Shown: positions 2,630-61,587 of the stretch, in pieces
How positions within the stretch are numbered: the first letter of the stretch is position 1
Layout: each line of letters begins with the position of its first letter
Assembly (NCBI GenBank): GCA_038496445.1
Contig: JALMLS010000404.1
Location: 62,001-126,000 of the forward strand
Direction of reading: 5' to 3'
Length of the DNA: 64,000 bases
Source of the DNA: Trichosphaerium sp. ATCC 40318
Taxonomy: Eukaryota; Protista; Tubulinea
Position numbers and translations under genes: made by a program
The notes under the pieces: model-generated
Told to the model about the DNA's origin: nothing
Databases searched by the model: none
What the model saw: only the letters and a program-made list of their open reading frames with translations

Positions 2630-2915
2630 AGGAGGAAGCGCTATTTATAATTGGAAGCCTCATGTCAGAAATCCGGGTGGGTTGTTCATTAATTACCAGA
2701 TTGAACACAATCTACTTGGATTTTTAGTGCTTAAAAACATGAATTTAATCTTGAACTGAAACCAGGAGATTGACGTACACTTCAGATACCATTGAGTTTT
2801 GAAAAGTTTACACTGTGAGAGGATGCACTAAAATAGTATAGTATCTCTTCAAGGTAAAATCGATTGTTTGTGCATGTGATGAAACACTAGATGTGTTACC
2901 TCTTCTCAGTATTCA
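2630..2915 (+). pseudogene. Decayed internal fragment of the F-box/Ig-like family (C-terminal domain only)
   Basis: Matches copy 6 at ~61147-61460 (ttggaagcctc.tgtcagaaatcc.ggtgggttgttc; ttgaactgaaaccaggagat; tgtgatgaaacac.agatgtgtt), with stops, indels and an internal deletion. Confidence 0.8.
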
Positions 2916-2941: not shown

Positions 2942-3871
2942 TTAAGATGTCTTATACATTGTAAGATTTACAACATTGCTTGTAACAGTTGAGCAATGTC
3001 CAAAAATAGAATTAGTAAGCCCTCGATGTTTTTCCTTTTCAGTATTGATTGTAATGAATACTTGAAGAGGGAAAACATCTGGTGTTTCATCATGTGCAAC
3101 AAAAACTTGATGTCTTATACCTTGAAGCGCCAAAGTACCAGGAGGTAGAAAGGGTGGAAATATGGATGGATTGATAAACTTTTCAAAACGCATCGGTACC
3201 TTGTATGTAACTGTACACCCAGGGTTCAACGCCTCATGAAAGTGGCGATTTTTTGAAAAAACAGTCTCACCGTGAAGATAGTGTTGGTAATTGTCGAGAA
3301 ACCCTTTAGGATCCTTTATTTCAGGCTTCCAAATATAAAAACAACTACCTCCTTCAATAAGATGGCAATCATCAAGGCTTGCCCCATAACCAAGGTACAC
3401 TTTCTCACGTGTTTTACCAATATTCTCGAGTGTAAGTGTGAATGTTATTGTGTCGCCTTTGTGAACATGGGTCTTGTCACAACTCAACTCTGAGATGATA
3501 TTTGAACACAATCTGTTTCGATACTTCTCTTTCCACGTGACTGCATCAAGATTATACAAAGTAGGCTTCTGCTTGCGCCTATAATATGACATTTGCTTAT
3601 TCTTAGCACTTGCGATGCGTTTGTGGATAGCAGACTCTATTTCTTCAGCGTCAAGACCCCATTTCTGATGATACAAATGTCGATAAATGTAATCTGAGTC
3701 ATTTCGTATCAATTCGCATAGATAATGGTTTGATTGTTGTAAAGATGCTAAATCTTGCCACAACAAATTGTTGCTAACGATAATACTCAAAATTATCTCG
3801 ACAGGCAGAGAAAACAAATCTGTTGTAGATGATCGTGATGTATCGAAACAACCACTACGTTTGGTCGTCAT
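2942..3871 (-). CDS. F-box + Ig-like (CARDB/DUF11-like) protein, family copy 1 (~309 aa)
   Basis: Intronless ORF. Start set at MTTKR (3871) by alignment to paralogs. F-box LFSLPVEIILSII..WQDLASLQQSNH; motif HVHKGDTITFTLTLENIG. Confidence 0.85.
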   Translation of the reverse strand: MTTKRSGCFDTSRSSTTDLFSLPVEIILSIIVSNNLLWQDLASLQQSNHYLCELIRNDSDYIYRHLYHQKWGLDAEEIESAIHKRIASAKNKQMSYYRRKQKPTLYNLDAVTWKEKYRNRLCSNIISELSCDKTHVHKGDTITFTLTLENIGKTREKVYLGYGASLDDCHLIEGGSCFYIWKPEIKDPKGFLDNYQHYLHGETVFSKNRHFHEALNPGCTVTYKVPMRFEKFINPSIFPPFLPPGTLALQGIRHQVFVAHDETPDVFPLQVFITINTEKEKHRGLTNSIFGHCSTVTSNVVNLTMYKTS

Positions 3872-14521: not shown

Positions 14522-15627
14522 TCTTGTAGAGTTATCGCTAAATTGAAAGTCTTCAAGTTCTCATGAAATCTTGCATGGTTCAGTGAAATTATTTTCCGCA
14601 GTACTTTAGGAATTCGGTTGTCATCTTTCGGGTTGCGGTTTTCAATTCACCCATTAGTTCATGATGTTTTCAGGTGGTATTGGAAACCATAAAGGCGTGT
14701 AGAAGTAAGTTGCTGTCTTTTTCGGCTCAAAGCGCTTTTTCTTACGGAAACAATGCCAACCTATCGTAAACCACTGTTAATGGCGTGTGAATGATTTAAA
14801 AGCGAATTTCGCTCTTGGACGCATCAACAGCTCGCCTTTGTTTCAATGCTTTTCTCTAGTTACCGGTTAAACTGGTAATGACTGATTTTGTAAAGTTTGA
14901 TTCGTTTTCCTTTTAAGGGTTTACAGCAAATCAGTCCACTAGGCTTTTCAGCTTGGCCTATAGTATGTAGATGTTAGCTTATATGTTCCTGCCTGTGTAT
15001 CACTTTTATACTAACACATATGTGTAAGTATTACGATATCCTCGGCGATTGAAGACAGAGTGTGGCTACAAGGACGTTGCAAAAATATATGAGTTTCAGC
15101 CCAACATAATTAGATACCAACTTTAACTTTGTCATAATCATGTATTCAATGGGTTAGTTCGGATAAGCTGGGTTATTCAACAATTAGATACGGATTTCTC
15201 AAATGACAAAGTCGTTAACTGAGTTCTTTATTTACAACCACTATCAGTAGATATTGGTTTAAACCATACTTTCGTACCTCTGTGGCGTTGAGGAAAAGTT
15301 TCTTTATGCAAAAGAAAATAGGACTACTAGTGTACACTGATCAACGATCTTTAGCACAACATTAAGCCAGAATTTGCCTAACCCTGTAACTCGTCTTTTA
15401 ACCCTTTCGACACGCACGTGATCATTTTTTGGTTTGTCGTGCTTTACTTTGTCTAATACATCTAGCTCGGAGCTCATAGTGTAAGGAGTAAATAATGTAA
15501 CTCTGTTGACTATTTCGATTAGGTGCTACAAACCAAAAGCTCCTCAACACCCTGACTCACCAAACGCCCATGAATATTCATGAATGAATATTAATGAATA
15601 TGGCTTACGGAACAATGAATATGAATA

Positions 15628-15867
15628 TTGCTTGTATTCATAACGGAAGGGCGTTACGATGGAGTTAAAGCATTGGCGGGTCCATACAAATGTTATCAAG
15701 TGACAGATCATGGTGTTAAAGCATTGGCAGGAGTCCATACTATTATACTGGGTCGTATTGAAATAACAAATGAAGGTGTTAAAGCCTTGGCAGGAGCCCA
15801 CACAGTTGAAATAAGTGGCTGTTATACAAAAACAGATGATGGCTTCCATCTATTGAGAACTTGGTGA
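15628..15867 (+). pseudogene. Orphan cassette of ~3 LRR units of the GVKALAGVHT type (no F-box, no ATG start)
   Basis: DGVKALAG..KCYQVTDHGVKALAGVHTI..ITNEGVKALAGAHTV. Nucleotide match to repeats of the 24219..25286 gene. Confidence 0.75.
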
Positions 15868-22020: not shown

Positions 22021-23559
22021 AGCTCATTACGCGTAACAAAAAAAAAAGTTACGCGTAACAAATTTTTCCTGGTCAAGTGACTCAGTGTCCTTGTTTTATT
22101 TTTTTTTGAGAAACGCCATATACGTTTTAATCATGCCTACAAGTGCAGGATATACTTTGATGCGATCATGGAATTTGTGAACAAGCCAGCAAAGTCAGCT
22201 GACTGATTCCAATTTTAGTGGGTTTTTTCGGTATTTGTTACAAAGTTTGCAATAATATTCCATCTTTTGTCCAAGCATTGTTGTTTATATATACAACACA
22301 TAAAATAGAATGGTATTAAACAAACCTCATTAAACTTGAAGTTTTTTAGTGTAATGACAGAATTGACAGACACCTCAAAAATTGTTGAGATTGTTTTTTT
22401 TTATTTTTGCAAAGTTGTCGCATGTACTACACAGACTCTTGAATAAATTTTTTAGTAATTTCACTTTCTAGCGTCTTTATATTGCTTATATATGAGTTCT
22501 AGGTATAAAAGGTTTGTTACAGTTAGCTACAAACAGGTTCAGAAAATGGTTTTTTGTATCTTTTGTGTGTTTGTAACTATTCATTTTTATGCTAATATTG
22601 TGCACTTAGTCAATATTGATCATTTGATCGTCTGAAATACAGCATCTCCTTCAACTAACACCATCTTTTTTAAAGGTACCTATTGGTGATAGCATTTTTC
22701 GGATTGTTTTTTGAGTGTCCAACAAAAAAAAAATACAATTTATTCAGAATTATAAAACGTCACCATAACACAAGGCCTTTGCAAGTACAAGATGTATTTG
22801 ATCATGATCAGGACACTTGGATACTATATTGTAATATGTGATGGCTACAGGGATGTCATTGTCATTTTCATAATTCCCGTAATCATTCGATAGTTTTGCT
22901 CTATACACTGCCCAGGCATTGAAGTACTCCATTTAGTTTGATTAGCATGATCAACAACATCAAAGTGAGTTGTATAAAATGAATGTATCACAGCTGACCA
23001 GCCCCAAAAACTAGCTTAATATGGATATTAAAGCTGTTTTCAAAAGTAGGATCATGTGCCTTTAAAAGTCTATCAATTAACTCTGACTTATTACCAACCA
23101 CTCAAACACTGTCTTTGCATTGTATTGGAAAACCCAGTTTTGCTACTGGGTTTAGAGACATGCTCAATTTCGGGGAAGGAAAATTTGCTCATATGTCAAA
23201 ACTCGCCAACCTTCATCAATAACTTTGTTTAGCTTTCAATCTGCTCTGTCGTTTGCATTTGTCTCTTCCTGTTGGCTTTTAGATTGTTTTATGTCTGAGT
23301 GCGCGATATTTTAGCGATTTTAGGCTATCACCTGCTCCTGCGTCCGGCTGACACATTCAAGCAGTAATTGACGCGTAGCAGCACGGCGTTTACGCGATTT
23401 CATGATTGTGTAACGGTTTGCGTTTTATTTTGCGTGAAGCGACTTTTAAACTATTGGAATAGGTAACAAATGTAGCGGTATTAATGTTGTCATGGTCAAC
23501 AGGGGTTTTTATTAAAATTTGTTACGCGTAATTTTTTTTTTTGTTACGAATAACGAGTT
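22021..23559 (-). mobile_element. Degenerate ~1.5-kb DNA transposon with ~45-bp imperfect terminal inverted repeats
   Basis: 22021-22066 (agctcattacgcgtaacaaaaaaaaaagttacgcgtaacaaatttt) is the inverse of 23514-23559. Broken coding remnants inside include SAP-like VVGNKSELIDRLLK and YTTHFDVVDHANQ..FNAWAVY, loosely piggyBac-transposase-like. Confidence 0.6.
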
Positions 23560-23621
23560 TAGTTCTTCATCAGTCAATTGAATGGAATCCTTCGAAAGCT
23601 ATTACTCTTGATAATTGATTA

Positions 23622-24289
23622 GGGACGATTTTTGTAAGCTTACAGTTCACACTTTCAAAAAAACTCTAGTGCATCTCAAAAACACTACTTTTACCCACAT
23701 TTAGGGTATGCTTCAGAGCACATATGTGGCTATAATTGATATAAACCAGAACTTGCTGGTAATTAATAGTGTGCTTCAATCAACTATTTCATTGAAACTA
23801 AAACTGAGGTTGTTCTGCCTGGTATCATATTTTGCTCCTCTATCACCACCATGTTTTGCAGGTAATTCTTTTACAGCATAGTGAGTAAGGATTACATTCT
23901 TTCGTTTAAGGCATTTTTTGTCACTTTCAGTGTACCACATAAAGCTATCGTCACCTGTCTCTAGACCTGATTGTTGTAAATTGGTCATTCTTTTGAGCAA
24001 TCATTCTAAGCCACAGATACCTTTTTCAAACCTTTACTTTTGGCTGCAGGTGCTCAATAAATCATTGTGTACCTACGCACGGTTATAGCATATTTGATGA
24101 TTTAGGTATCAAAACACAGAGGTTTCTTTTTCAAGGAAGCTGATGAACATATAGTTAAGTCTTAAAAAAAATGCCACAAGTAAATTAACTAATTTATTCC
24201 ACTTAACAATAGAGCCATTCATTGCAAACGTACATTCACACCGGATAAAGCATTGATATGAGGTGTGGACCGCTTACAAAAATCGTCCC
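23622..24289 (-). mobile_element. Non-autonomous TIR element, copy A (18-bp TIR GGGACGATTTTTGTAAGC, TA target duplication)
   Basis: Perfect TIRs at 23622-23639 and 24272-24289, each flanked by TA. The interior is homologous to copy B. Confidence 0.9.
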
Positions 24290-25286
24290 TACAATCCACA
24301 AGCGTAATAGTATGAACACCAGCCAATGTTTTAACACCATCATCCGTTACTTTATTACAGTAAGTTAGATTAACTGTGTGGGCTCCTGCTAAGGCTTTAA
24401 CACCATCATCTGTTATTTCATTACACCTGTATAGATCAATAGTATGGACTCCTGCCAATGCTTTAACTCCATCATCTGTTATTTGAATACACCAAGATAG
24501 ATCAATTGCATGAACCCCTGCCAACGCTTTAACTCCATCATTCGTTATTTGATTACACCAATATAGGTCAATAGTATGAACTCCTGCTAAAGCTGCGACT
24601 CCATCATCCGTTATTCCAAAACAACATCTAAGTATAATTGTATGAACGCCAGCTAAAGCTTTAACACCTTCATCTGTTATTAGCTTGCTGCAGTATGATA
24701 GATCAACTGCATGAACTCCTGCCAAAGCTTTAACACCACAATCTGTCACTTGATAACATTTAGAAATACTAATTGCATGGACTCCCGCCAATGCTTTAAC
24801 TCCATTGTCTGTTATTTGAGTACAGCAAGATAAATCAATTTTCCGTATTCCAGCAAGCTGAGCAACCATCTCATCATTCACGTCAGCCTTCATACTGGAA
24901 TGAAACCATCCAACTTTATATGTGGTAAAGCTAATACTATCAATGACTTTGAACCCACTAAAGTCAATATTTTTGTCCAACTTGGACAGTTCGAGCGCAT
25001 AAGCGCCATGTAGGTACTGCAAATCTTTTTGGTTGATACGAAAATCAATAGTAATTGTACTTGTACTGATTAAATGTCTAAATCTCTGAAACAACGTTCT
25101 GAGCCTTCTTCTAGATTTAATAATAATTTTTCTACCACTCGTGTATCCTATATGCTGTACTGCGATATCGGACAATAAATGTGATGTTTGAGCAACTGAA
25201 CGCATGGAGGACGCAGGAACAAACTGTAGAATGTTAACTGTTAATTCAACGGGTATCTCATCAAAGAATGCGGTATTTGAGTTCAT
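24219..25286 (-). CDS. F-box + ~9 x 22-aa LRR protein; last 23 codons supplied by the TIR element
   Basis: F-box FFDEIPVELTVNILQFV. Tandem LAGVHxIxLxxCxxITDDGVKA repeats. Intronless. Confidence 0.9.
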   Translation of the reverse strand: MNSNTAFFDEIPVELTVNILQFVPASSMRSVAQTSHLLSDIAVQHIGYTSGRKIIIKSRRRLRTLFQRFRHLISTSTITIDFRINQKDLQYLHGAYALELSKLDKNIDFSGFKVIDSISFTTYKVGWFHSSMKADVNDEMVAQLAGIRKIDLSCCTQITDNGVKALAGVHAISISKCYQVTDCGVKALAGVHAVDLSYCSKLITDEGVKALAGVHTIILRCCFGITDDGVAALAGVHTIDLYWCNQITNDGVKALAGVHAIDLSWCIQITDDGVKALAGVHTIDLYRCNEITDDGVKALAGAHTVNLTYCNKVTDDGVKTLAGVHTITLVDCRDDFCKRSTPHINALSGVNVRLQ

Positions 25287-28215: not shown

Positions 28216-29166
28216 TTTGTTGTTTATCGTGTACGAGAAACTGTTTAATGGTCTTAACTTCTACTTTTAAGGATACTTTCCTTATTTAGAAGGTAAAGTC
28301 CTTAAACTGAAATCAGAACTACGTAAATGTTTCTACGGTAGTACACGCTCTAAAACACAAGCCTCAACAACAGTCCTAGGTTTGAATTCTACTGGATCTT
28401 TGTGGCGACCGGAATTGCTTTAGCACAAAGCCATAGCTGGATAGAAAACTCCTTATGTCGTAAAACAGAGCACTACCTTTGGGAGTGAAATTGGTCCCAT
28501 GTTTTTACAAAAAAAAACCGCTTCAAAGATGGCATGCGAGAGGGCAGAGTTAAAGTAACATGTACGACCTTGAAGGGTCTCAGGCTTCATGACCAAGCAA
28601 TCAAGGTAAGAGATAGGTTCTCCTCCAATCCGTTGTTTGTAGGAGCCAATGGACGATAGGGATCTAACATGTTCATAAAGTAGTGAACGTGCAAAAAACT
28701 GTACATTTTGGGCAATTAGATAGCGACGGTATTGCTAGCCAAACTCCTTCCAAGGATACTAGAGTATACAAGGCAATGATTGGCACTTTCTAGATGACTA
28801 TGATGGAAATGGTGACATTGGGGATGAGACGTTTTGCCTATAATTGGTAAAAAAACATGTAAAAAACTTAACCGACTCATAAAGATTGCAAGATAATTTT
28901 GAACGCTATACTTGTAACCGAATATGCCCAACATATAGTAGATAATGTACAAAAAATAAATTCACGTTTTTGTTTGCTGCTAAGGACATGGGAACTACAC
29001 AACAAATATTCTCTCTAGATACCAAGAGGAGTGACCGCATTCTGGCCATAAAATCCTGATTGAACTGACAATGGACAAATCTAGTACATAAAGCAGTGGT
29101 GGCAGTTTACGTGACTATTTCATTGAAGGAACGACTTAAAAACAATCACAGATTAACCGAAGCTAA

Positions 29167-30108
29167 ATGGCAATGAAACGCATCACGTGTGTTGATACAT
29201 CAAGTACAGAAGTCACAGGCTTGTTTTCGCTTCCAATTGAGATACTACAACATATTATTGTTAGCAACGACCTTTCATGGCAAGATTTGGCTTCATTACA
29301 ACAATCAAACCATTATCTGTGCGAAATGATACAAAACTCATCAGATTACATTTATCGTCATTTGTACCATCATAAATGGGGTCTTGATGCTGAGGATATA
29401 GAGTTCGCTGTACATCAACTTATCCGCAGAAAAGGGTGTATGCGCAAGTCTCCCCATTCAGAAGAAATGCCAACTTTGTATAATCTTAATGCAGTCACGT
29501 GGAAAGAAAAGTACAGAAATAAACTCCTTCCAAATATTATCTTGGAGTTGAATTGTGACAACAAACATGTTCACAAAGGACAGACAGTAACCTTCAAACT
29601 TACACTTCAGAATATTGGTAAAAAACAAGAGCAAGTCTACCTTGGCCATGGCTCCAATTGGATACCCGATCATTATATTGAAGGTGGAGATGTTGGTTAT
29701 ATATGGAAGCCTATTATCACAGATCATCGGTTTCTCAACAATTTCAAGAGCGACCACGCATTTGCTGCTCATTTTTATGGAGTGGGCAATGATCACTCTT
29801 ATTTTAAAATGAACCCAGGGGATAGAAAATCATTTGATATGCCATTACATTTTGATAACAAGAAATCACAGTTAAAATTTAAATCTAGAACAACTTACAT
29901 ACCTCCTGGTTTATTGTCTTTTCAAAGTAAAATCTGTGAAGTGATGGTTGCATGTGATGAAACACCAGATGTGTTTCCTCTTAAAATATTTGTCAAACTA
30001 CACACAGCCAATCACGTTCCGTTTGAATTTAAGGGTCATACTAAGATGCATTGCATAGCAGTAACAAGCAATGTTGTAAATCTTACAATGTACAAAACAC
30101 GCCAATAA
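29167..30108 (+). CDS. F-box + Ig-like protein, family copy 2
   Basis: Intronless 313-aa ORF with all family framework motifs. Confidence 0.88.
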   Translation: MAMKRITCVDTSSTEVTGLFSLPIEILQHIIVSNDLSWQDLASLQQSNHYLCEMIQNSSDYIYRHLYHHKWGLDAEDIEFAVHQLIRRKGCMRKSPHSEEMPTLYNLNAVTWKEKYRNKLLPNIILELNCDNKHVHKGQTVTFKLTLQNIGKKQEQVYLGHGSNWIPDHYIEGGDVGYIWKPIITDHRFLNNFKSDHAFAAHFYGVGNDHSYFKMNPGDRKSFDMPLHFDNKKSQLKFKSRTTYIPPGLLSFQSKICEVMVACDETPDVFPLKIFVKLHTANHVPFEFKGHTKMHCIAVTSNVVNLTMYKTRQ

Positions 30109-30377: not shown

Positions 30378-31271
30378 ATGGAAATAAAAGGGGTCATCAC
30401 ATGTATTGATTCATCAAACGCAGTTACAGACTTGTTTTCGCTTCCTCTCGAGATACTACAACATATTATTGTTAGTAACGACCTTTCATGGCAAGATTTG
30501 GCGTCGTTACAACAATCAAACCATTATCTGTGCGAAATGATACAAAACTCATCAGATTACATTTATCGTCATTTGTATCATCAGAAATGGGGTCTTGATG
30601 CTGAAAAAATAGAGTCCGCTATCCACCAGCATACCAAAATACAAGAGCATATAAATAATTATGAGCATCCCATGGCTTATTTCTTGTCACCCAAGTTGCG
30701 TAATCTTGAGTCAATCACGTGGAAAGAGAAATACAGAAATAAACTTCGTCCAAACATCATTGCAGAGTTGAATTGTGACAACAAACATGTTCACAAAGGA
30801 CAGACAGTAGCATTCAAACTTACACTTCAGAATATTGGCAAAAAACAAGAGATAGTGGACCTTTATCAAATGGAAAATGGTGATGCTATTTGCATTTGGG
30901 AGCCTATAATCACAGATGAAAGAGGGTTTCTCTACAATTTCAAGAGTATCCACAATTATTATTTAAAACGGGAAATTGGTTCTGGTTGTGCTAGATTGAA
31001 TTCAGGGGACCAACAAACAATAGAGATACCATTATTGTTTGATAATTTTAAGTCAGATGTAGGATGTTCTAGATCTAGAATATTCAAGCTACCTCCTGGT
31101 ACATTATCTCTTCAAGGTAAAATCTCTGAAGTGATGGTTGCATGTGATGAGACACCAGATGTGTTTCCTCTCCAAGTATTTGTAAAACTCTATGTTTATG
31201 CATTTTCCAATAGTAAAAATCCAATAGTTTCAAGCAATGTTGTACATCTTACAATGTACAAAACACACTAA
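30378..31271 (+). CDS. F-box + Ig-like protein, family copy 3
   Basis: Intronless 297-aa ORF; framework conserved; loops 2 and 5 are shortened. Confidence 0.88.
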   Translation: MEIKGVITCIDSSNAVTDLFSLPLEILQHIIVSNDLSWQDLASLQQSNHYLCEMIQNSSDYIYRHLYHQKWGLDAEKIESAIHQHTKIQEHINNYEHPMAYFLSPKLRNLESITWKEKYRNKLRPNIIAELNCDNKHVHKGQTVAFKLTLQNIGKKQEIVDLYQMENGDAICIWEPIITDERGFLYNFKSIHNYYLKREIGSGCARLNSGDQQTIEIPLLFDNFKSDVGCSRSRIFKLPPGTLSLQGKISEVMVACDETPDVFPLQVFVKLYVYAFSNSKNPIVSSNVVHLTMYKTH

Positions 31272-31726: not shown

Positions 31727-32674
31727 TTAAGATGTCTTGTACATCGTAAGGTTTACAACATTGCTTGTAACAGTTGAGCAATGTCCATAAACAACCTTGT
31801 TACCCCTAGTGTTATAAACCCTTATATGTGAATCCTTTAAAGTGTTGAGTTTTACGAATACTTGGAGAGGAAACACATCTGGTGTCTCATCACAAGCAAC
31901 CATCACTTCAGAGATTTTGCCTTGAAGAGATAATGTACCAGGAGGTATTTTAGACTGCTGCAACGCTAGAAATAATCCTCTTAATGGCTTTAAGTTGTCA
32001 AAAAGTAAAGGTATCTCAAATGTCTGTCTATCTCCTGGTTGCAGAATACGAGCAAGTCTATCTAGTTCAAAATATTCACGTTCAATCTTGTAATTTTGGA
32101 ACAACTCACCAGGATTTATGACAAGAGGTTTCCAAATATACACAGCACCTCCACCTTCAATTCGCTGACAATCATCAAGCCTTGAACCAGTACCAAGGTG
32201 TACTGTCTCTTCCGTCGTACCAATATTATGAAGTGTAAGTGTGAATGTTATTGTGTCGCCTTTGTGAACATGGGTCTTGTCACAACTCAACTCCGAGATG
32301 ATATTTGAACACAATCTGTTTCGATACTTCTCTTTCCACGTGACTGCATTTAAATTATACAAAAGAGTAGGCCCATAATACCTACAATATGACAATTGCT
32401 GATTTAAAGCAAGTGCGATGTGTTTGTGGATACCAGACTCTATTTCTTCAGCATCAAGACCCCATTTCTGATGATACAAATGACGATAAATGTAATCTGA
32501 CGAGTTTCGTATCATTTCGCACAGATAATGGTTTGATTGTTGTAACGAAGCTAAATCTTGCCATGAAAGGTCATTACTTACAATAATATGTTGTAGTATC
32601 TCGATTGGAAGCGAAAACAACTCTATGACTTCCACGCATAATGTATCAACACGTGCAAGCCGTTTAGGTGTCAT
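31727..32674 (-). CDS. F-box + Ig-like protein, family copy 4 (mosaic)
   Basis: Intronless 315-aa ORF, convergent with copy 3. Confidence 0.88.
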   Translation of the reverse strand: MTPKRLARVDTLCVEVIELFSLPIEILQHIIVSNDLSWQDLASLQQSNHYLCEMIRNSSDYIYRHLYHQKWGLDAEEIESGIHKHIALALNQQLSYCRYYGPTLLYNLNAVTWKEKYRNRLCSNIISELSCDKTHVHKGDTITFTLTLHNIGTTEETVHLGTGSRLDDCQRIEGGGAVYIWKPLVINPGELFQNYKIEREYFELDRLARILQPGDRQTFEIPLLFDNLKPLRGLFLALQQSKIPPGTLSLQGKISEVMVACDETPDVFPLQVFVKLNTLKDSHIRVYNTRGNKVVYGHCSTVTSNVVNLTMYKTS

Positions 32675-32979
32675 TTGAACTTTAAATAATTATAATTTGG
32701 GCAATCAGTTTTCACTGAGCGACACAGAAAGATTTTTGACAAATAAACAAAGGATTGGTTTTTATGGTTTTATTTTTTTGTACAGGGTTAGGCAACATAT
32801 AAAAGTAAAGAATATTCTGCCTCACATGTATCATGATCCAATATTCGAAAAAGGATAAGTAGTAGAGAGGGCGAAAATCGTATTCTTTTGTGTGTAGAAA
32901 AAATACCCAACAAATATCATTATTATTTCTTTTTTTGTTCTTGTTTTTTTTTTTTTCAGTTCTTAGGCCTGGTGTGATG

Positions 32980-42559: not shown

Positions 42560-42642
42560 GAAAAAAATCGGAAATGGTAATAAAAAAAGCATTAGCCACG
42601 TGGCTAATTGGGTGTAATAAAAACCACTATCAAGGTTGTATA

Positions 42643-43990
42643 GGGACTATTTTTGTAAGCGGTTCACACCTCTTATATCAAAGCTTTAGCGAGTGTTAAT
42701 GTATCTCTAGAACGAATGGCTCTATTGTTATGTTCTAAGTGTGAAATAAATTATTTACTTTTTTACATGTTTTTTGGCGTATTTTTTTAATACATAGCTA
42801 AAAAAGCTTCAATCGAGCTTCATTGAGAATAAGCAGATGATTAGAGCCTGCGATCATCATAAACGGCTCTTGCAAATAAATTTATGCGTTATGGGCTAAA
42901 ATAAAGCTTATGGTACCACAATATGAACGTGTATGTACAATGTACCTTTAAACGACGTTTATCGCTCGGAAAACGCTTAAAACGTTGGTTTACTGTGTTA
43001 ATATTCTAGTCAAATCGAGTTCCCCAATACCGATGTAGGGCAAGCGTGTACAAGCGTTTAAATGGTGTACATACATTTAATAGCTATTTTACATATGCTA
43101 AGAAGGGTTTCAAGTCTGTACAGCCTTGCGTAATCTGTAAATTCCAATATTCCGTCCTCCGTTACCATAAGCAATTTTACATTTTATGAAATACCATGAG
43201 TAATTGAAGGTCCCTTACTCTTTGAAAGTACAGTCCATACACTGTATATGATACAGCATAACTTTCAGCAATAGTTAAACAATTGTAGCAGCATAGTTTC
43301 AAAGAAACTGTTTTTGGTAAGTACTGAAGTATCTCCATGTAAAAAGTAAGTTCTGTCTCTAAAACTTCTGTAGTGGTAAAACATAACTACAGCAAGCTTT
43401 AAGGACCTCTGATTCAATAAAGTACTAAGCAAGAGTGAGTATTTTGACATTTTCATTTTACTATTATGTTCATCAACTTCTATGAAAAAGTAACCTCCGT
43501 GTTTTGATACCTAAATTATCAAATACTCTATAACTGCATATAGGTAGACAATGGTTTATTAGGCACCTGCCGCCAAAAGGAAAGATTTGAAAAAGGTATC
43601 TGTGGGTTAGAATGATTGTTCAAAATAGTGACCAATTTACAGCAATCAGGTATAGAGACGGGTGATGATAGCTTTATGTGGAACACTGAAAGTGATAAAA
43701 AAGGCAAGAAACGACAGAATGTAATCCTTAATCACTATGATGTTCAAGAATTACCTGCAAAACATGGTGGTGTTAGAGGAGAAGAATATGATCCCAGGCA
43801 GAAAAAACTCGGTTTTAGATTCAATGAAATAGTTGATTGAAGTACACTATTAATTACCAGCAAGTTCTGGTTCAACAAAATTGTAGACACAAATGTGTTC
43901 TGAAGCATACCCAAAATTTGGCCAAAAATAACGTTTTTGAGGTGTGCTAGACTTTTTTTGAAAGTGTGAACTGCTTACAAAAATCGTCCC
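42643..43990 (+). mobile_element. Non-autonomous TIR element, copy B (~1.35 kb, TA-flanked)
   Basis: GGGACTATTTTTGTAAGC at 42643-42660 and GCTTACAAAAATCGTCCC at 43973-43990. Segments 42643-42790 and 43460-43990 match copy A in inverted orientation; about 670 extra internal bp. Confidence 0.88.
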
Positions 43991-44041
43991 TAACGCATTT
44001 CACTAAGTCCTCCTACTTAAGCAGAACAAAAATCGTTACAA

Positions 44042-44974
44042 ATGGCAACTAAAGAGCTTATGCGTGTTGTTGTACTATGTATAAAAGTCACAGAGTTGTT
44101 TTCGCTTCCTATTGAGATACTACAACATATTATTGTGAGTAACGACCTTTCATGGCAAGATTTAGCTTCGTTACAACAATCAAACCATTATCTGTGCGAA
44201 ATGATACGAAACTCGTCAGATTACATTTATCGTCATTTGTATCATCAGAAATGGGGTCTTGATGCTGAAGAAATAGAGTCTGATATCCACAAACGCATCG
44301 CACTTGCTTTAAATAAGCAATTGTCATATGGGCCTACTTTGTATAATCTTGAGTCAATCACGTGGAAAGAAAAGTACAGAAATAAACTACGTCCAAACAT
44401 CATTGCAGCGTTGAGTTGTGACAACAAACATGTTCACAAAGGCGAGACAGTAACATTTAAACTTACACTTCAGAATATTGGCAAAACGCAAGAGATAGTA
44501 CGTCGTAATTATGGCTCTACTGTTGGTGAAGACCATCGAATTGAAGGTGGTTATTCTGTTTGTATTTGGAAGCCTCTTCTTAAGAATACAGGAGCTAATT
44601 TTGATAATTATAAGACAACGACCTTCCATGGTTTCGTTTCTGAGGTGCACATGGAAGAGAAGGACTATTATTTTACAATGAATCCAGGGGATAAACAAAC
44701 ATTTTATATGCCTTTACTTTTTGACAACTTTGAGCCAACAGAATTTAACGTTGCTCCTCAAATACCTGGTACATTATCTCTTCTAGGCAAAAAGTATGAA
44801 GTGTTTGTTGCATGTGATGAAACACCAGATGTGTTTCCTCTTAAAGTATTCGTAAATCTCAGTTCTCAAAAGGAGGTTTTCAAAAAAAACCATCAAGGGG
44901 ATAACACGACTGTTTGTGGACATTGTTCAGCTATTACAAGCAATGTTGTAAACCTTACAATGTATAAAATGTGA
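44042..44974 (+). CDS. F-box + Ig-like protein, family copy 5
   Basis: Intronless 310-aa ORF starting ~50 bp after the TIR element. Confidence 0.88.
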   Translation: MATKELMRVVVLCIKVTELFSLPIEILQHIIVSNDLSWQDLASLQQSNHYLCEMIRNSSDYIYRHLYHQKWGLDAEEIESDIHKRIALALNKQLSYGPTLYNLESITWKEKYRNKLRPNIIAALSCDNKHVHKGETVTFKLTLQNIGKTQEIVRRNYGSTVGEDHRIEGGYSVCIWKPLLKNTGANFDNYKTTTFHGFVSEVHMEEKDYYFTMNPGDKQTFYMPLLFDNFEPTEFNVAPQIPGTLSLLGKKYEVFVACDETPDVFPLKVFVNLSSQKEVFKKNHQGDNTTVCGHCSAITSNVVNLTMYKM

Positions 44975-45717: not shown

Positions 45718-46720
45718 ATGGAGAGTAATAACCAAAATACCATTTCTACGCTTGGCGAAAGACAATCGTACGTTATTTAACCAAAATACCCGTATTCATA
45801 CGCTATCAAGATCTACAAACCTCCTGGACATACCTGTCGAGATTTTAACGCTTATTCTGACAAATACTGAACAAGCACGTTTCTCAGCAGCGCAAAGCTG
45901 TCAACTACTTAGTTCTATCATCCATAACATCGTTGGGTATAGTACAGTGGCAATAAAAACGTTCGCTCAAGCGTACTTGTTTAACGAAGTGTTCCCTTTC
46001 GAAACAGCAAGAAGGAATACACATATCATCATCAAAACGAGTCTAGTCAAGGACAGCACAAACAACGATGGAGATGACATTGTAACAATCCTTGCCGGAT
46101 TTAAAACATTGGGTATTGAAGGTCTATTCGGTGGTCTTGTTGTTGAAGAGCAAGCCCTTGATAGTACTAATGAGTGTGGGTTACGTACAATTGACCTAAG
46201 TCTATCTTCAGCATCAGACTGTAGTATTAAAATGCTTGCTGGTATTCATACTATAGATCTAAGAAATACTTTTGTTGGAGATGAAGGACTTCAAGCTCTT
46301 GCTGGTGTACATACTATCAATTTAGAGCATTGCTCGATAAGTGATAAAGGTGTAAAGGCTTTAGCTGGTGTACATACTATCAACTTGTGTTATTGCTATG
46401 CGGTTAGTGATGTAGGTGTCAAGGCTTTGGCTGGTGTTCATACGATAAACCTTTCAAGAACACGTGTTACTGACGCCGGTTTAAAATATTTAGTTGGAGT
46501 ACATACCTTGGAGATCATCAGTACATCTGTTAGTGATGATGGGATAAAGGTATTGAAAGGTATTCATACGTTAATAGCGTACCATACGCGCGTCAGCGGG
46601 AATGTTACAATTCCTGGGATACAAGTTTTTGTTCATAAACCTCCGGCTAAAAAAGAAACGAATCTTGTTTTTGAAGACAGCTCTTCTGACGAAGACCTTG
46701 GATTCTCTCTTTTTGGTTGA
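45718..46720 (+). CDS. F-box + 21/22-aa LRR protein with a P-stalk-like acidic tail; intron 45768-45810
   Basis: ATG at 45718 is joined in frame by a GTACGT..AAG intron. F-box LLDIPVEILTLIL; LAGVHTINL repeats; ends EDSSSDEDLGFSLFG*. Confidence 0.85.
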
Positions 46721-54949: not shown

Positions 54950-55476
54950 TTATGAGCAGGCACATGTGAATGGAGAAAACAATGGGATAATAACGTCAAT
55001 TAATTGCAGAATATCATCGCACAATACTTATGGATTGTAACAAGTTGGGATTATTTATGTAACACTATCTTGTGCTTGTTCTTAATTTGATGTTCATTTT
55101 TGTTTTGAGAATATCATCGCACAATACTTATGGATTGTTGGTGTTATTTTATTTGCATTGTAATGCTGGCAGTTGGTTTTTTGATTATTTATGTAATTAG
55201 CACTATCTTGTGCTTGTTCTTAATTTGATGTTCATTTTTGTTTTGACTCTCATTGTATTTTCCATGTTTCCAGCATATGCCGTTACATACTCCATAGAAA
55301 GTCAATTGCATTGCAATATTCCATAAGGTATATTTTGACTCTCGAAGTTATGACCTTTATTACTCCACTTATCTTGTTAGAAGTCAGTTTCAGCGACAGT
55401 CTTTTTTGGTTGGTTTTAAGTCACATCGTCCTTAGAAGTCTTTCGTTATCAATTTTTTTTATGTATTATCTAAAAG

Positions 55477-57800
55477 GAGGATGAAAGCGAATTATTTTAT
55501 GATATGGGTCACGTGGGTTACTGCAGTACTTGCTGGTTCGCATTTCTTTTGTCTTTATGTCTTCGCACAAAATATACACTTACAAAGAGCAAAGCACGCC
55601 CGTCTGGTAACTCACTGTACTTTTCTGGCGTCTCTGGTGATATTAGTGAAAATGGTAATGGAGCGCTCAAGATCAAGTTAAACGCTACTGAATATGATGA
55701 GTTTACATTCGCTGCATGGATAAAATTCGCCAGGTAAGAATAACATTTTAGTATTCAACAAGTTGTACACCACTAATTAATCTTTTTCCGTAATTAGAGT
55801 TTGTAATACAACTAAAAATGATTGTAATATTGACGCGGTGTTCGCTAATAAGTATGCTGGTTGTGGCGACCGTCCAGGAGACGCTTTATTTGTTGGTAAG
55901 AGTAACCTCAATAAATCACTATTTTAAAAATACTAACACGTGTGTAGGTAAAGCTGGTAGTGGTTTACAGCAACTTACTTATGAAAGCGCTGCAGGAGGC
56001 TGTATTGCTTATACCACAGACGATTACCTTGTGCCTTCGGATGAATGGGTAAGTAGACAGATTCGGATTACCCAAACTTGGTGATCACAAACTCGTATTA
56101 AAATTTAACCGTATTACTCAGATCTTTGCTTATTTGTTGAAGGTTTTAGTGGCGTTTACACGTTCTTGGATATCAAATATGACAACGAAATACTTAATCT
56201 CTGACAGAGTGTTTCGCTTTAATAAGACTTTTAATAATTTGCCTCATGCAACAATTTCAGATTGCTACATTGGTGCCTTCCCTGATCCAGTCCGCATTGT
56301 TCATAGCTTCAACGTACATTATTGTTTTACTCCATTTATCTGTTAATACGTGCACAATTAGGGAAGTATTGATAACGTTGGAATTTGGTCAAAGGTTCTC
56401 ACCGAAACAGAAATATCAAATTTTGCTTCGAATCCTTTTGATGATAGTGATCATGACAGTCTTATTGGATACTTTACTTTTGATAACCAACTTGCTCCAA
56501 GTGGCGATATTACAGATACAGAAAACAAAGTATTTGCAGAGCGAATAGGAACTGGAGCAAAACCACTTTTTCGTAAGTCATCGAAAAAAAATCACAGAAG
56601 TTAATTTACAGATTAGAATATGGAACACAATTGTCAGATTCCCCTATTCCTCCACCACCAGAATCTCCAACTACATTGATGCCAACATCAATACCAACTA
56701 GTTCGAGTTGCATAAATGGAAGTGTGTTTGATGACAGCTTTTGTGATGGAGATATTGTTGTTGTTCAAAAAGATTTGGTTGTAGTGGACACACATTTCCT
56801 TGAAGATAAGCTGGTAGTTAGAGGTACACTGAGGTATAATTTTAGCAACACTAACAGTGTGAATTTCAGGTGATTTTACCTTGGGATCAGGAGGAGCTCT
56901 TATATTCAGTGAGAATACAACAATAACTGTTGATGATTGTGTGACTTTAGAAGGCGAGATTGTACTGAATTTCATTACCTCTTCCAAGGTACCGCTCATC
57001 AGATGGAAAGAAAATTGTGAAGCTCCGAAGTTAGATTCATTCAGCATTCGAAACACCAATGGTTGCTCTGTTGAGGCATCCATATCAGGCACGAGACTGT
57101 TTCATTGTCTAAACAAATGTATTAACTGTTTATAGGGCGGACACTCCTTGTTCTATCACAATTTGCACCACAGGGAAGATGTAAAAGTGGCTCAATATAT
57201 ATTAGTGGATATATACTTGTTTCTGTTGTAATGTGGTTTGTACTCATGTAGCAAATAAACGTAATTTAGAACCAACACTTTTAGCTTGGGTATGATTATT
57301 CATGTGTTCCTAGTTTACTGTGAAGACTTGAATGCTTGTGTAAGTAGTATTTGCTTTGTCAGCATATCGTGAGTTCACAGACTAACAGATGGCAACGAAC
57401 ATCCCTTGTCTCACACACAACTAATACTCCTTACTTCATTAACTTCGTTTATTACTTGTACAAGACATTTACTACATTGCTCGTAGGTTGCTCAAACCTT
57501 TGTCGCGAAAAAAGGATCCTCTAAAACCTGCCTCTTTAGTTACAATAGCCTGTTTTAGCGTAAGAGTTCTTCCACCTCGAGAATATCAGCGAGAATCTCG
57601 TTTGGCATGTCTAACAGCATTTTGACATCTGTATCACGGGTGTTATCCATTCTTTTCTGTAGTTGTAAGAAAGAGTGGCTGCCTTCAATAGTTAATATCG
57701 CAAAAGTCTATTGAGGATTTATGTCTGGTAATAGTGTTTGCGTGAACCTCTCCTTGATCAGTGAAAGTAAAAAAAGGTAGTGTTTAATGTTTTAAGACTG
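55477..57800 (+). CDS. LamG/concanavalin-like + Pro/Thr stalk + beta-rich domain + TM segments; surface-receptor-like gene, copy A (ends uncertain, may be disrupted)
   Basis: FTFAAWIKF, W|VLVAFT, GSIDNVGIWSKVLTETEI, LIGYFTFD (LamG); PPPPESPTT stalk; hydrophobic 3' exons. Confidence 0.6.
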
Positions 57801-58191
57801 GTGACAGTAGAATCACGGGATTGATACCATATATTACTACCACTTTAGCAACGCTTGTGCTCTGGTCATGTGAATCAACAGTTGTTGCTTACTTTTGTTT
57901 ATTAGCAGTGGCGTATGTGCCAATATGAGCGTTTGACTGTATAATCAAGCAAGCACAACCAACATTGGCAAATTGGGTAAACTAAAGAAAACCTGAAATA
58001 ACCAAACGTCATATCACGTGATAGCTCATTATAAAATAACACGAGATATTTTAAATTAATTATTTAGCTGGTTCGAGTTGAACGACGCTGACAAACATCA
58101 GGCAGAAAAAAATCAAGTCTTTTCGATTTTAAGCCTATTCGTCCTTAATCGTTTTAAAATTGACTTCCCTTCTCGTACATATGTCTCAAAC

Positions 58192-60004
58192 AAGGATGAG
58201 AGTGTATTATTTTATGATATGGATCGCGTGGGTTACTGCAGTACTTGCTGGTTAGCCTTATTTATTTTTTGTCTTTATGTCTTCGCACAAAATATACACT
58301 TACAAAGAGCAAAGCACGCCCGTCTGGTAACTCACTGTACTTTTCTGGCGTCTCTGGTGATATTAGTGAAAATGGTAATGGAGCGCTCAAGATCAAGTTA
58401 AACGCTACTGAATATGATGAGTTTACATTCGCTGCATGGATAAACTTCGCCAGGTAAAAGAATTCTTTTCCTTCCCTTAATTGCCAAAACAATATTGAGC
58501 TCGTTACCTATAATTAGGGTTTGTAATGCAACAGAAGAAAATTGCAAGATTGATACGATATTTACTAGTAAGTATGCTGGGTGTTACCGTTCAGGAGACG
58601 CATTATTTGTTGGTACGAAGGAAAATAACTGCTTTTAAAAAAGGACCACGTGCTCACAAAAAAACAAATAAAAGGGAAACACGATGTTGGTTTGCAACAG
58701 CTTACTTATGAAAATGCAATTGATAGTTGCTTTGCTTATACTACTGATAATTATCTGGTACCATCCAATGAGTGGGTAAGTAGTAGAAACAACAAAAGTT
58801 TTAAAAAAAAAGATCAAAACATGTTGCCTTCATGTCGCTTCTATGAATACGCTTAGTATTTTGTTCAGGTTTTGGTGGCGTTTACACGTTCTTGGATATC
58901 AAATATGACAACAAAATACTTGATTTCTGACAGAGTGTTTCGCTTTAATGAGACTTTCAATGATTTGCCTCATACAACCATTTCAGAATGCTATATTGGT
59001 GGCTTCCCTGATCCAGTCCGTATTGTTCATAGCTTCAATGTACATTAATTTTTCACTTGCCCATTTATTTGTTAATACGTGCATAATTAGGGAAGTATTG
59101 ATAACGTTGGAATTTGGTCAAAGGTTCTTTCTGAAACAGAAATATCAAATTTTGCTTCGAATCCTTTTGACGATAGTGATCATGACAGTCTTATTGGATA
59201 CTTTACTTTTGATAACCAACTTGCTCCAAACGGCGATATTACAGATACAGAAAACAAAGTATTTGCAGAGCGAATAGGAACTGGAGCAAAACCACTTTTT
59301 CGTAAGTCATCGAAAAAAAATCACAGAAGTTAATTTACAGATTAGAATATGGAACACAATTGTCAGATTTACCTATTTCTCCTCCTACAGAATCTCCAAC
59401 ACTAACACCAACATTAACACCCGCCCCGATATCAAGTTGCATAAATGGGAGTGTATTTGATGACAGTTTTTGTGATGGAGATACTGTTATTGTTCCTAAA
59501 GATGTGGTTGTATTGGACACACATTTCCTTGAAGATAACATTATAGTTAGAGGTACAACAAAGCAACACATTCAAAAATACGCTGTAATTTTAGCAACAC
59601 TAACAGTGTTGCATATAAGGTGACTTTACCTTGGGATCAGGAGGAGCTCTTATATTCAGTGAGAATACAACAATAACTGTTGATGATTGTGTGACTTTAG
59701 AAGGCGAGATTGTATTGAATTTCATTACCTCTTCCAAAGTATCACTCATCAGATGGAAAGAAAATTGTGAAGCTCCGAAGTTAGATTCATTCACTGTTCG
59801 AAACACCAATGGTTGCTCTGTTGAGGCATCCATATCAGGTACAAGACTCTTCCAATGTTGCCAACTGAGAAATTTATAAGGGCAAACACTCCTTGTTCTA
59901 TTACAGGTCCCATCACAAGGAAAGTGTAGCAACGGTTCAATAGCAATTAGTGGGTATATACTTGTTTCTGTAATAATGTGGTTTGTACTCATGTAGCAAA
60001 TAAA
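58192..60004 (+). repeat. Direct ~1.8-kb duplicate of 55477-57259 (LamG receptor-like copy B, truncated after the first TM)
   Basis: Long near-identical blocks, including an intron. Homology stops after gtactcatgtagcaaataaa. Confidence 0.9.
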
Positions 60005-60615: not shown

Positions 60616-61587
60616 ATGGCAACTCAGCAATTCGCACGTGTTAATACTTTACTCACGGAAGTAACAAACTTGTTTTCGGTACCGATCGAGATACTTTTAC
60701 ATATTTTTGTCAACAACGACCTTTCATGGCAAGATTTGGCGTCATTACAACAATCAAACCATTATCTGTGCGAAATGATACGAAACGACGCTGATTACAT
60801 TTATCAACATTTGTATCATCAGAAATGGGGTCTCGATGCTGAAGAAATAGAGTCTGTTGTCCATCAACGTATCGTGCAAGATTTTAACGCTCGAAAGCCC
60901 TTTTTGGACGCGTCGTCACGTATTCAAATGTCATCAACTTTTTACAATCTTGGTGCAGTCACGTGGAAAGAAAAGTACAGAAATAAACTCTGTCCAAACA
61001 TCATTGCAGAGTTGAGTTGTGACAAGAAACATGTTCACAAAGGACAGACAGTAACACTCAAACTTACACTGGAGAATATTGGTAAAACGGAAGAGACAGT
61101 ACACCTTGGTACTGGGTCAAGGCTTGATGATTGTCATCTTATTGAAGGAGGAAGTGCTGTTTATATTTGGAAGCCTCTTGTCAGAAATCCTGGTGGGTTG
61201 TTCGAAAATTACCAGATCGAAAACGATGTACCTGGATATTTTAATGCAAAAATACATGATGAATTTTTTATTGAACTGAAACCAGGAGATAGACGTACAT
61301 TTGAGATACCATTACTTTTGGACAGACTGAAACGATCAACAATAGCACCACGGCTTTTAATGGGGCCATCTGACCCACCCTCTGGTACATTATCTCTTCG
61401 AGGCAAAATATATCAAGTGTGTGTTGCTTGTGATGAAACACCAGATGTGTTTCCTCTTAAATTATTTGTAAAAATCAATACTGAAAAGGAGTCGCATAGA
61501 GCAGCTCATTTTAGTATATTTCATGGACATTGTTCGGCTGTTATAAGCAATATTATAAACCTTACAATGTATAAGACGTCCCAATAA
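60616..61587 (+). CDS. F-box + Ig-like protein, family copy 6
   Basis: Intronless 323-aa ORF with all framework motifs. Confidence 0.88.
   Translation: MATQQFARVNTLLTEVTNLFSVPIEILLHIFVNNDLSWQDLASLQQSNHYLCEMIRNDADYIYQHLYHQKWGLDAEEIESVVHQRIVQDFNARKPFLDASSRIQMSSTFYNLGAVTWKEKYRNKLCPNIIAELSCDKKHVHKGQTVTLKLTLENIGKTEETVHLGTGSRLDDCHLIEGGSAVYIWKPLVRNPGGLFENYQIENDVPGYFNAKIHDEFFIELKPGDRRTFEIPLLLDRLKRSTIAPRLLMGPSDPPSGTLSLRGKIYQVCVACDETPDVFPLKLFVKINTEKESHRAAHFSIFHGHCSAVISNIINLTMYKTSQ

Follow-up and report, generated by a model that had tools for sequence, protein, structure and literature searches.

The six F-box/Ig genes in the window, by which we mean the whole 64,000-nucleotide stretch of DNA from the marine amoeba Trichosphaerium sp. 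that was analysed, are nucleotide-level mosaics of one another. The segments that they share at high identity are the conserved frameworks of the genes; these segments differ in age and stop at the variable loops, and several of the copies are transcribed. It is likely that the best explanation is episodic ectopic gene conversion, which homogenises the frameworks of a lineage-specific F-box family evolving by birth-and-death. The preliminary description of this DNA had proposed ectopic conversion that uses the frameworks as anchors and so reassorts the variable loops. Conversion and the swapping of segments stand, but the roles of frameworks and loops do not, because the high-identity tracts are themselves the frameworks.

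An F-box/Ig gene family in the window

The GC content of the window is 32-43% and its housekeeping genes, HSP90 for example, are eukaryotic and intron-rich; the published Trichosphaerium sp. genome has 37.7% GC and 8.7 introns per gene (PMC10521059). Six intact, intronless, single-ORF copies of 297-323 aa were found, each combining an F-box-like N-terminus with a DUF11-like Ig domain, together with one decayed copy, which fits birth-and-death evolution:

2942-3871, minus strand: copy 1, 309 aa; recovered as RNA-type contigs by another study, of 2015
29167-30108, plus strand: copy 2, 313 aa; 29303-29971 matched exactly by two overlapping X1 contigs
30378-31271, plus strand: copy 3, 297 aa; tail-to-tail with copy 4
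31727-32674, minus strand: copy 4, 315 aa; the most mosaic of the copies
44042-44974, plus strand: copy 5, 310 aa; a copy 4-type F-box and helix joined to a copy 3-type F2
60616-61587, plus strand: copy 6, 323 aa; nearest to copy 4 in V2-V3a
about 2630-2914, plus strand: c7, a decayed, 5'-truncated fragment with stops and indels; tail-to-tail with copy 1

The six copies are evenly related, with 65-77% nucleotide identity in all pairs, and alternate conserved blocks (F1-F6) with variable, indel-rich stretches (V1-V5). Homology begins near the ATG and reaches an AATAAA that overlaps or adjoins the stop codon, and copies 2, 3 and 6 keep some similarity upstream. Comparison of the flanks revealed no terminal inverted repeats (TIRs) and no shared flanks bracketing the copies, an unrelated TIR element near copy 5 apart. 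The fragment c7 is 83.5% identical to copy 6 (61146-61320) and only about 68% to copy 1, and for this reason we rejected the idea that it is an amplification chimera. It adjoins the stop of copy 1; a read-through transcript of copy 1 could form a hairpin with part of its coding sequence (arms 2864-2905 and 3064-3105, 81%).

The F-box assignment comes from matches to PF12937 in all six copies (E=6e-4 to 0.011, under the gathering score) and from an Atlas feature match to an F-box cluster (0.92); a sequence search of the PDB gave no match for it. Helices are predicted after the F-box, and the C-terminal 200 aa are modelled as an Ig-like beta-sandwich with long variable insertions. The first strands of this domain match bacterial DUF11/DUF7927 repeat proteins (phmmer; hhalign E=3e-5), although under the Pfam cut-offs. 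A model of the Ig domain of moderate confidence (pTM 0.60) finds Ig-like folds at Z of about 8 and DUF11 clusters at TM of about 0.48, the full-length protein model being poor (pLDDT 44). From the F-box motif, the proteins are probable SCF substrate adaptors. Billions of proteins were searched and only one full-length homologue was found outside the window, the MMETSP transcript protein P0001 (50% identity); its linker peptide occurs among the loose ends of X1 and X4, indicating that P0001 is a further paralog of this species, and no contig is recorded for it. F-box is among the commonest virus-like domains of Trichosphaerium sp. (PMC10521059). The F-box/Ig family has no relatives in IMG/VR or the JGI metagenomes and no meaningful viral structure match, hence a viral origin is unsupported.

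Several other features of the window were recorded. Two non-autonomous TIR elements, at 23620-24291 (20-nt perfect arms) and 42641-43992 (29-nt arms, 93%), are 86% alike over 541 nt; the former provides the last codons and the stop of an F-box-LRR gene (24219-25286, minus strand) and the latter ends 50 nt upstream of the copy 5 ATG. At 22023-23557 there is a second element, about 1.5 kb long, whose inverted arms measure 44 nt (91%). The F-box-LRR gene is one of two that are intronless (24219-25286 and 45752-46720), accompanied by an LRR remnant at 15625-15858; relatives of these genes are mostly MMETSP/JGI transcripts, and an IMG/VR search was without match. The motif CACGTG occurs 47 times in the whole window, where about 7 occurrences are expected by base composition, with one conserved site falling within the TWKEKY framework and further sites lying upstream of copies 3 and 6.

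Copy 4 is assembled from tracts with different partners

The closest relative of copy 4 changes along its length, as had been described for five of its segments, all of which we recovered:

32387-32624, minus strand: tract (i), F-box and helix V1a; copy 5 at 44092-44329, 238 nt
32232-32349, minus strand: tract (ii), framework F2, the start of the Ig domain; copy 1 at 3429-3546, 118 nt
32082-32215, minus strand: tract (iii), V2-F3-V3a; copy 6 at 61087-61220, 90%
31847-31947, minus strand: tract (iv), framework F5; copy 3 at 31090-31190, 101 nt, 3 mismatches
31730-31787, minus strand: tract (v), C-terminal framework F6; copy 1, 3 mismatches in 58 nt

Each partner stands well apart from the other four copies. 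In tract (i) (32390-32620) copy 4 has 7 mismatches to copy 5 against 36-43 to the others; the corresponding figures are 1 against 21-26 in tract (ii), 13 against 46-68 in tract (iii) (32082-32215), 3 against 14-25 in tract (iv) (31848-31947) and 3 against 10-20 in tract (v). The 7 mismatches of tract (i) fall in 3 replacement and 4 silent codons, and the single mismatch of tract (ii), the youngest exchange event, is silent. For tract (iv) the partner is the inverted neighbour, the arms lying 656 nt apart. Tract (iii) is the oldest of these and probably reflects vertical sisterhood of copies 4 and 6 left unconverted, not a moved cassette; c7 is no better than copy 6 as its source and is the best match for no copy 4 tract.

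Copy 4 is not alone in this, as tracts are present in most of the copy pairs. Copies 3 and 5 share a tract of 143 nt with 9 mismatches (F2 of copy 3, 30701-30843), copy 3 also shares F1/F2 pieces with copy 2, and the INTEKE segment of copies 1 and 6 is 83% identical. As first reported, partners lie up to about 29 kb apart and on both strands. Tract divergence ranges from 1 to 10%, with private changes that include silent ones, and this inequality indicates that the exchange events were spread over evolutionary time.

Statistical evidence for recombination

We used our own equivalents of GENECONV, RDP and GARD, namely a fragment scan and PHI, triplet and AU tests. PHI gave p=1e-4 on all informative sites as well as on framework-only sites, and p=5e-4 on silent sites; eight triplet tests reached p=2e-4, which is the permutation floor (x60 = 0.012). 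None of the 105 trees was accepted by all five segments of the tree test, these segments having been picked post hoc, after the data had been seen. When sequences were simulated without recombination, under rates specific to sites or to regions, none of 500 runs attained the observed switching statistics, which were 38 against a simulated maximum of 28-34 and 21 against a maximum of 14-17. Tracts, PHI, tree test and simulations together confirm that the copies are mosaics and support segmental ectopic exchange among paralogs.

Recent exchange tracts lie in frameworks and hardly in loops V3-V5

In each copy, recent high-identity tracts take up 41-73% of the framework bases; for loops V3-V5 the figure is 0-3%, and V3b, V4 and V5b are covered by no recent tract in any of the 15 pairs. 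PHI on the Ig loops was not significant (p=0.11-0.44, n=65 sites), compared with p=1e-4 for the frameworks (n=64), and seven of the 105 trees fit all Ig-loop segments, against none for the five tracts. In silico, the loop test detects 2-3 recent swaps about 80-88% of the time and complete shuffling in 48-75%, a power that poor loop alignment may lower; the former figure means that the negative result carries weight for recent events among the six copies. Every copy has private V1b, V3b, V4 and V5b loops, with 48-54% in the best pair. The ratio pN/pS is 0.36 in frameworks versus 0.89 (95% CI 0.77-1.03) in loops, so the loops may be near-neutral or under relaxed or mixed selection, and a value near 1 leaves room for positive selection at some sites. 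At silent sites, too, the frameworks have diverged less (pS 0.35) than the loops (0.54, which poor alignment may inflate), as expected from homogenisation. DGR-like mutagenesis was considered as a source of loop variation and rejected, the loop differences being even over the three codon positions and without an invariant template copy.

Two loops had been described as exchanged. The first, V1a, lies in the predicted helix after the F-box, outside the Ig domain, and is the one variable piece that has clearly been reassorted within a tract (94% between copies 4 and 5, 85% between copies 1 and 5). For the second, a single tree of all the Ig loops can accommodate the similarity of copies 4 and 6 in V2-V3a.

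Mechanism

In our preferred reading, conversion of frameworks, a family of probable SCF substrate adaptors would expand by duplication and evolve by birth-and-death, while ordinary homology-dependent, non-allelic gene conversion would occasionally overwrite 60-240 nt of one copy, across distances of up to about 29 kb and in either orientation. Because conversion depends on homology, its tracts fall within conserved framework sequence and break off where the diverged, indel-rich loops begin. In this way the frameworks would become homogenised and mosaic, and the loops would be mostly vertical, drifting or diversifying by substitution and indels. Copy 4 would be a sister of copy 6 whose frameworks were later overwritten by copy 5-, copy 1- and copy 3-type sequence. 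We infer conversion rather than double crossover, as well as the direction and the true donor of each tract.

The same patchwork was seen in an unrelated, intron-containing tandem duplicate pair (55469-57259 and 58184-60004) that served as a control for conversion, in which identical stretches of 178 and 138 nt alternate with others of 45-65% identity. Patchwork identity thus looks like a general property of duplicates in this genome and not one specific to the F-box/Ig family.

An alternative is that framework-anchored exchange does move loops, in a genome-wide family whose private loops have their donors beyond the window; the substrate receptors would then form a combinatorial repertoire that may serve in defence against giant viruses or bacteria. 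Consistent with this, V1a is common to copies 1, 4 and 5 (81-94%) and V2/V5a to copies 1, 4 and 6 (71-92%), an incompatible pattern in which V1a has been reassorted relative to V2, and PHI on V1a together with V2-V5 gives p=0.0005-0.003. Further paralogs whose best match switches along their length do exist, and loop pN/pS is compatible with some positive selection. However, the piece responsible, V1a, is a predicted helix, the Ig loops alone carry no signal at a power that would usually reveal 2-3 recent swaps, and V3b, V4 and V5b are free of recent tracts in all pairs. Nor does the window hold a silent donor array or cassette archive, its family members being the six intact copies and c7, and copy 1 is the same in the 2015 RNA set and in the assembly. 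We consider this alternative unlikely. A more elaborate version, to which we give little credence, would have genome-wide 'F-box-nanobody'-like receptors in which conversion preserves the Skp1-binding/Ig scaffold and recombines loops with paralogs outside the window, as a combinatorial ubiquitin-ligase immunity against giant viruses or bacteria.

Exchange through RNA, by cDNA template switching or cDNA-mediated conversion, would also account for the lack of introns: all copies are intronless in an intron-rich genome, their homology stops at the AATAAA, and several are transcribed. We regard it as improbable, given that poly(A) remnants are missing after the AATAAA signal, that copies 2, 3 and 6 retain upstream similarity, and that the intron-containing duplicate pair is patchwork too.

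Transcript evidence and assembly check

Chimeras of collapsed paralogs, arising in assembly or polishing, would imitate mosaics, and the Trichosphaerium sp. genome, the probable source of the window, was whole-genome-amplified and assembled with Canu, Pilon and Redundans (PMC10521059). The RNA-type runs that cover the region are spliced at a neighbouring gene (joints 33002/33121 and 33234/33367) and so behave as RNA. The runs of one sample hold copies 2 and 4 and further paralogs, and X4 holds copy 1 and others; the samples may pool cells or nuclei, and X4 is perhaps from the same strain. X2 record 12 equals copy 4 over 32369-32817 with 0 differences, including the alleles unlike copy 5, and contigs X1-4/5 reproduce copy 2 over 29303-29971 exactly. 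X4 record 22, from the other study of 2015, has 40 differences to copy 4 over 32218-32563, exactly the number that copy 1 has there; carrying these 40 differences, it shows that the junction between the F-box of copy 1 and its tract (ii) is real. Copy 1 was unchanged between that RNA set and the assembly. An X1 contig with the copy 4 letter at 32294 was rejected as proof of tract (ii) in copy 4, since copy 2 has the same letter. Moreover, no tract is 100% identical, each having private and often silent changes. The private changes and the independent RNA contigs make assembly chimerism very improbable; no listed independent contig crosses the junctions of copy 4 from (i)/(ii) and (ii)/(iii) onwards, and this leaves a small doubt.

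The further paralogs in the RNA data lie outside the window, and one of them has only 9 differences to copy 4 in tract (ii) while matching none of the six. The family is therefore larger than the six copies analysed, and the actual donors may differ from the apparent partners. Two other transcribed regions were observed near the copies: 28634-28991, upstream of copy 2, has 82-93% matches to several RNA-type contigs and is a transcribed dispersed repeat, and the transcript of the spliced upstream gene has its 3' end at 32819, nearly abutting the contigs over the copy 4 5' region (from 32817), so that read-through is possible.

Finally, purifying selection on the frameworks (pN/pS 0.36), or convergence on framework residues, could mimic partner switching without any recombination, a reading that is extremely improbable and that we exclude as the explanation of the mosaicism because the signal holds on silent sites and never arises in simulated data that include regional rate variation.

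Significance and comparison with known systems

Ectopic conversion that makes chimeric paralogs is a known mechanism, and judged by its mosaicism alone the present family is a good case of it but an ordinary one. It does illustrate how loops can be free to diverge in a family whose scaffold stays common, and it is a warning that gene trees of such mosaic families are unreliable. More notable than the mosaicism is the protein family itself, which has no full-length relative outside the species among billions of proteins and whose combination of an F-box-like motif with a bacterial DUF11-like Ig domain looks new. Should the proteins truly be SCF adaptors directed against parasites, one could use them to test, in a virus-exposed amoeba, whether expanded F-box families serve as intracellular immune receptors.

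FBXO3 and the plant SKIP16-type proteins combine an F-box with ApaG, an Ig-like beta-sandwich for substrate recognition, and are conserved low-copy genes. The family described here likewise joins a putative F-box to an Ig-like beta-sandwich, and ApaG is among the mid-rank fold matches (Z 6.5-6.7); however, no sequence similarity was found between them, and the domain here resembles bacterial DUF11/DUF7927 repeats. Chicken immunoglobulin conversion is AID-initiated, somatic and unidirectional, running from pseudo-V donors to one rearranged gene whose CDRs it diversifies. The short templated tracts between V-like sequences are alike in the two systems, but the analogy, drawn in the preliminary description, fails at the loops, as tracts cover 0-3% of V3-V5 and the Ig-loop PHI is not significant.

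The parallel with VSG mosaics of Trypanosoma brucei, which are formed during infection from silent gene and pseudogene donors, use a single expression site and vary a surface antigen (PMC3708902), extends to segmental exchange between dispersed, diverged paralogs. All six copies here are intact and several are transcribed, with no single expression site seen; the tracts are old and lie over frameworks; and private tract divergence of 1-10%, with copy 1 the same in the 2015 RNA, speaks against a somatic or within-infection timescale. No signal peptide is evident, the strongest hydrophobic stretch (KD19 1.2-1.9) being the F-box helix, and in the window neither a silent archive nor a surface antigen was found.

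The unstable F-box families of Caenorhabditis, with birth-death evolution, a conserved F-box, a fast C-terminal domain and foreign proteins as proposed targets (PMC8665587), resemble the present family. Species-specific expansion, purifying selection on the F-box, a fast-evolving substrate domain and decayed copies are common to both, the difference being that the substrate domain here is a DUF11-like Ig fold with loop pN/pS of 0.89 (CI 0.77-1.03). On our analysis, the F-box/Ig family behaves like the plant Type I NLR resistance genes (lettuce RGC2, tomato I2), which likewise undergo frequent exchange and consist of evenly related chimeric paralogs. In tomato I2 (clades I/V), exchange tracts measure 77-3,022 bp and cross sub-loci (PMC4161772), whereas those described here measure 60-240 nt between partners up to 29 kb apart. 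The proteins are different, identity is lower here (65-77% versus mostly above 85%), and exchange in the F-box/Ig family avoids the variable loops.
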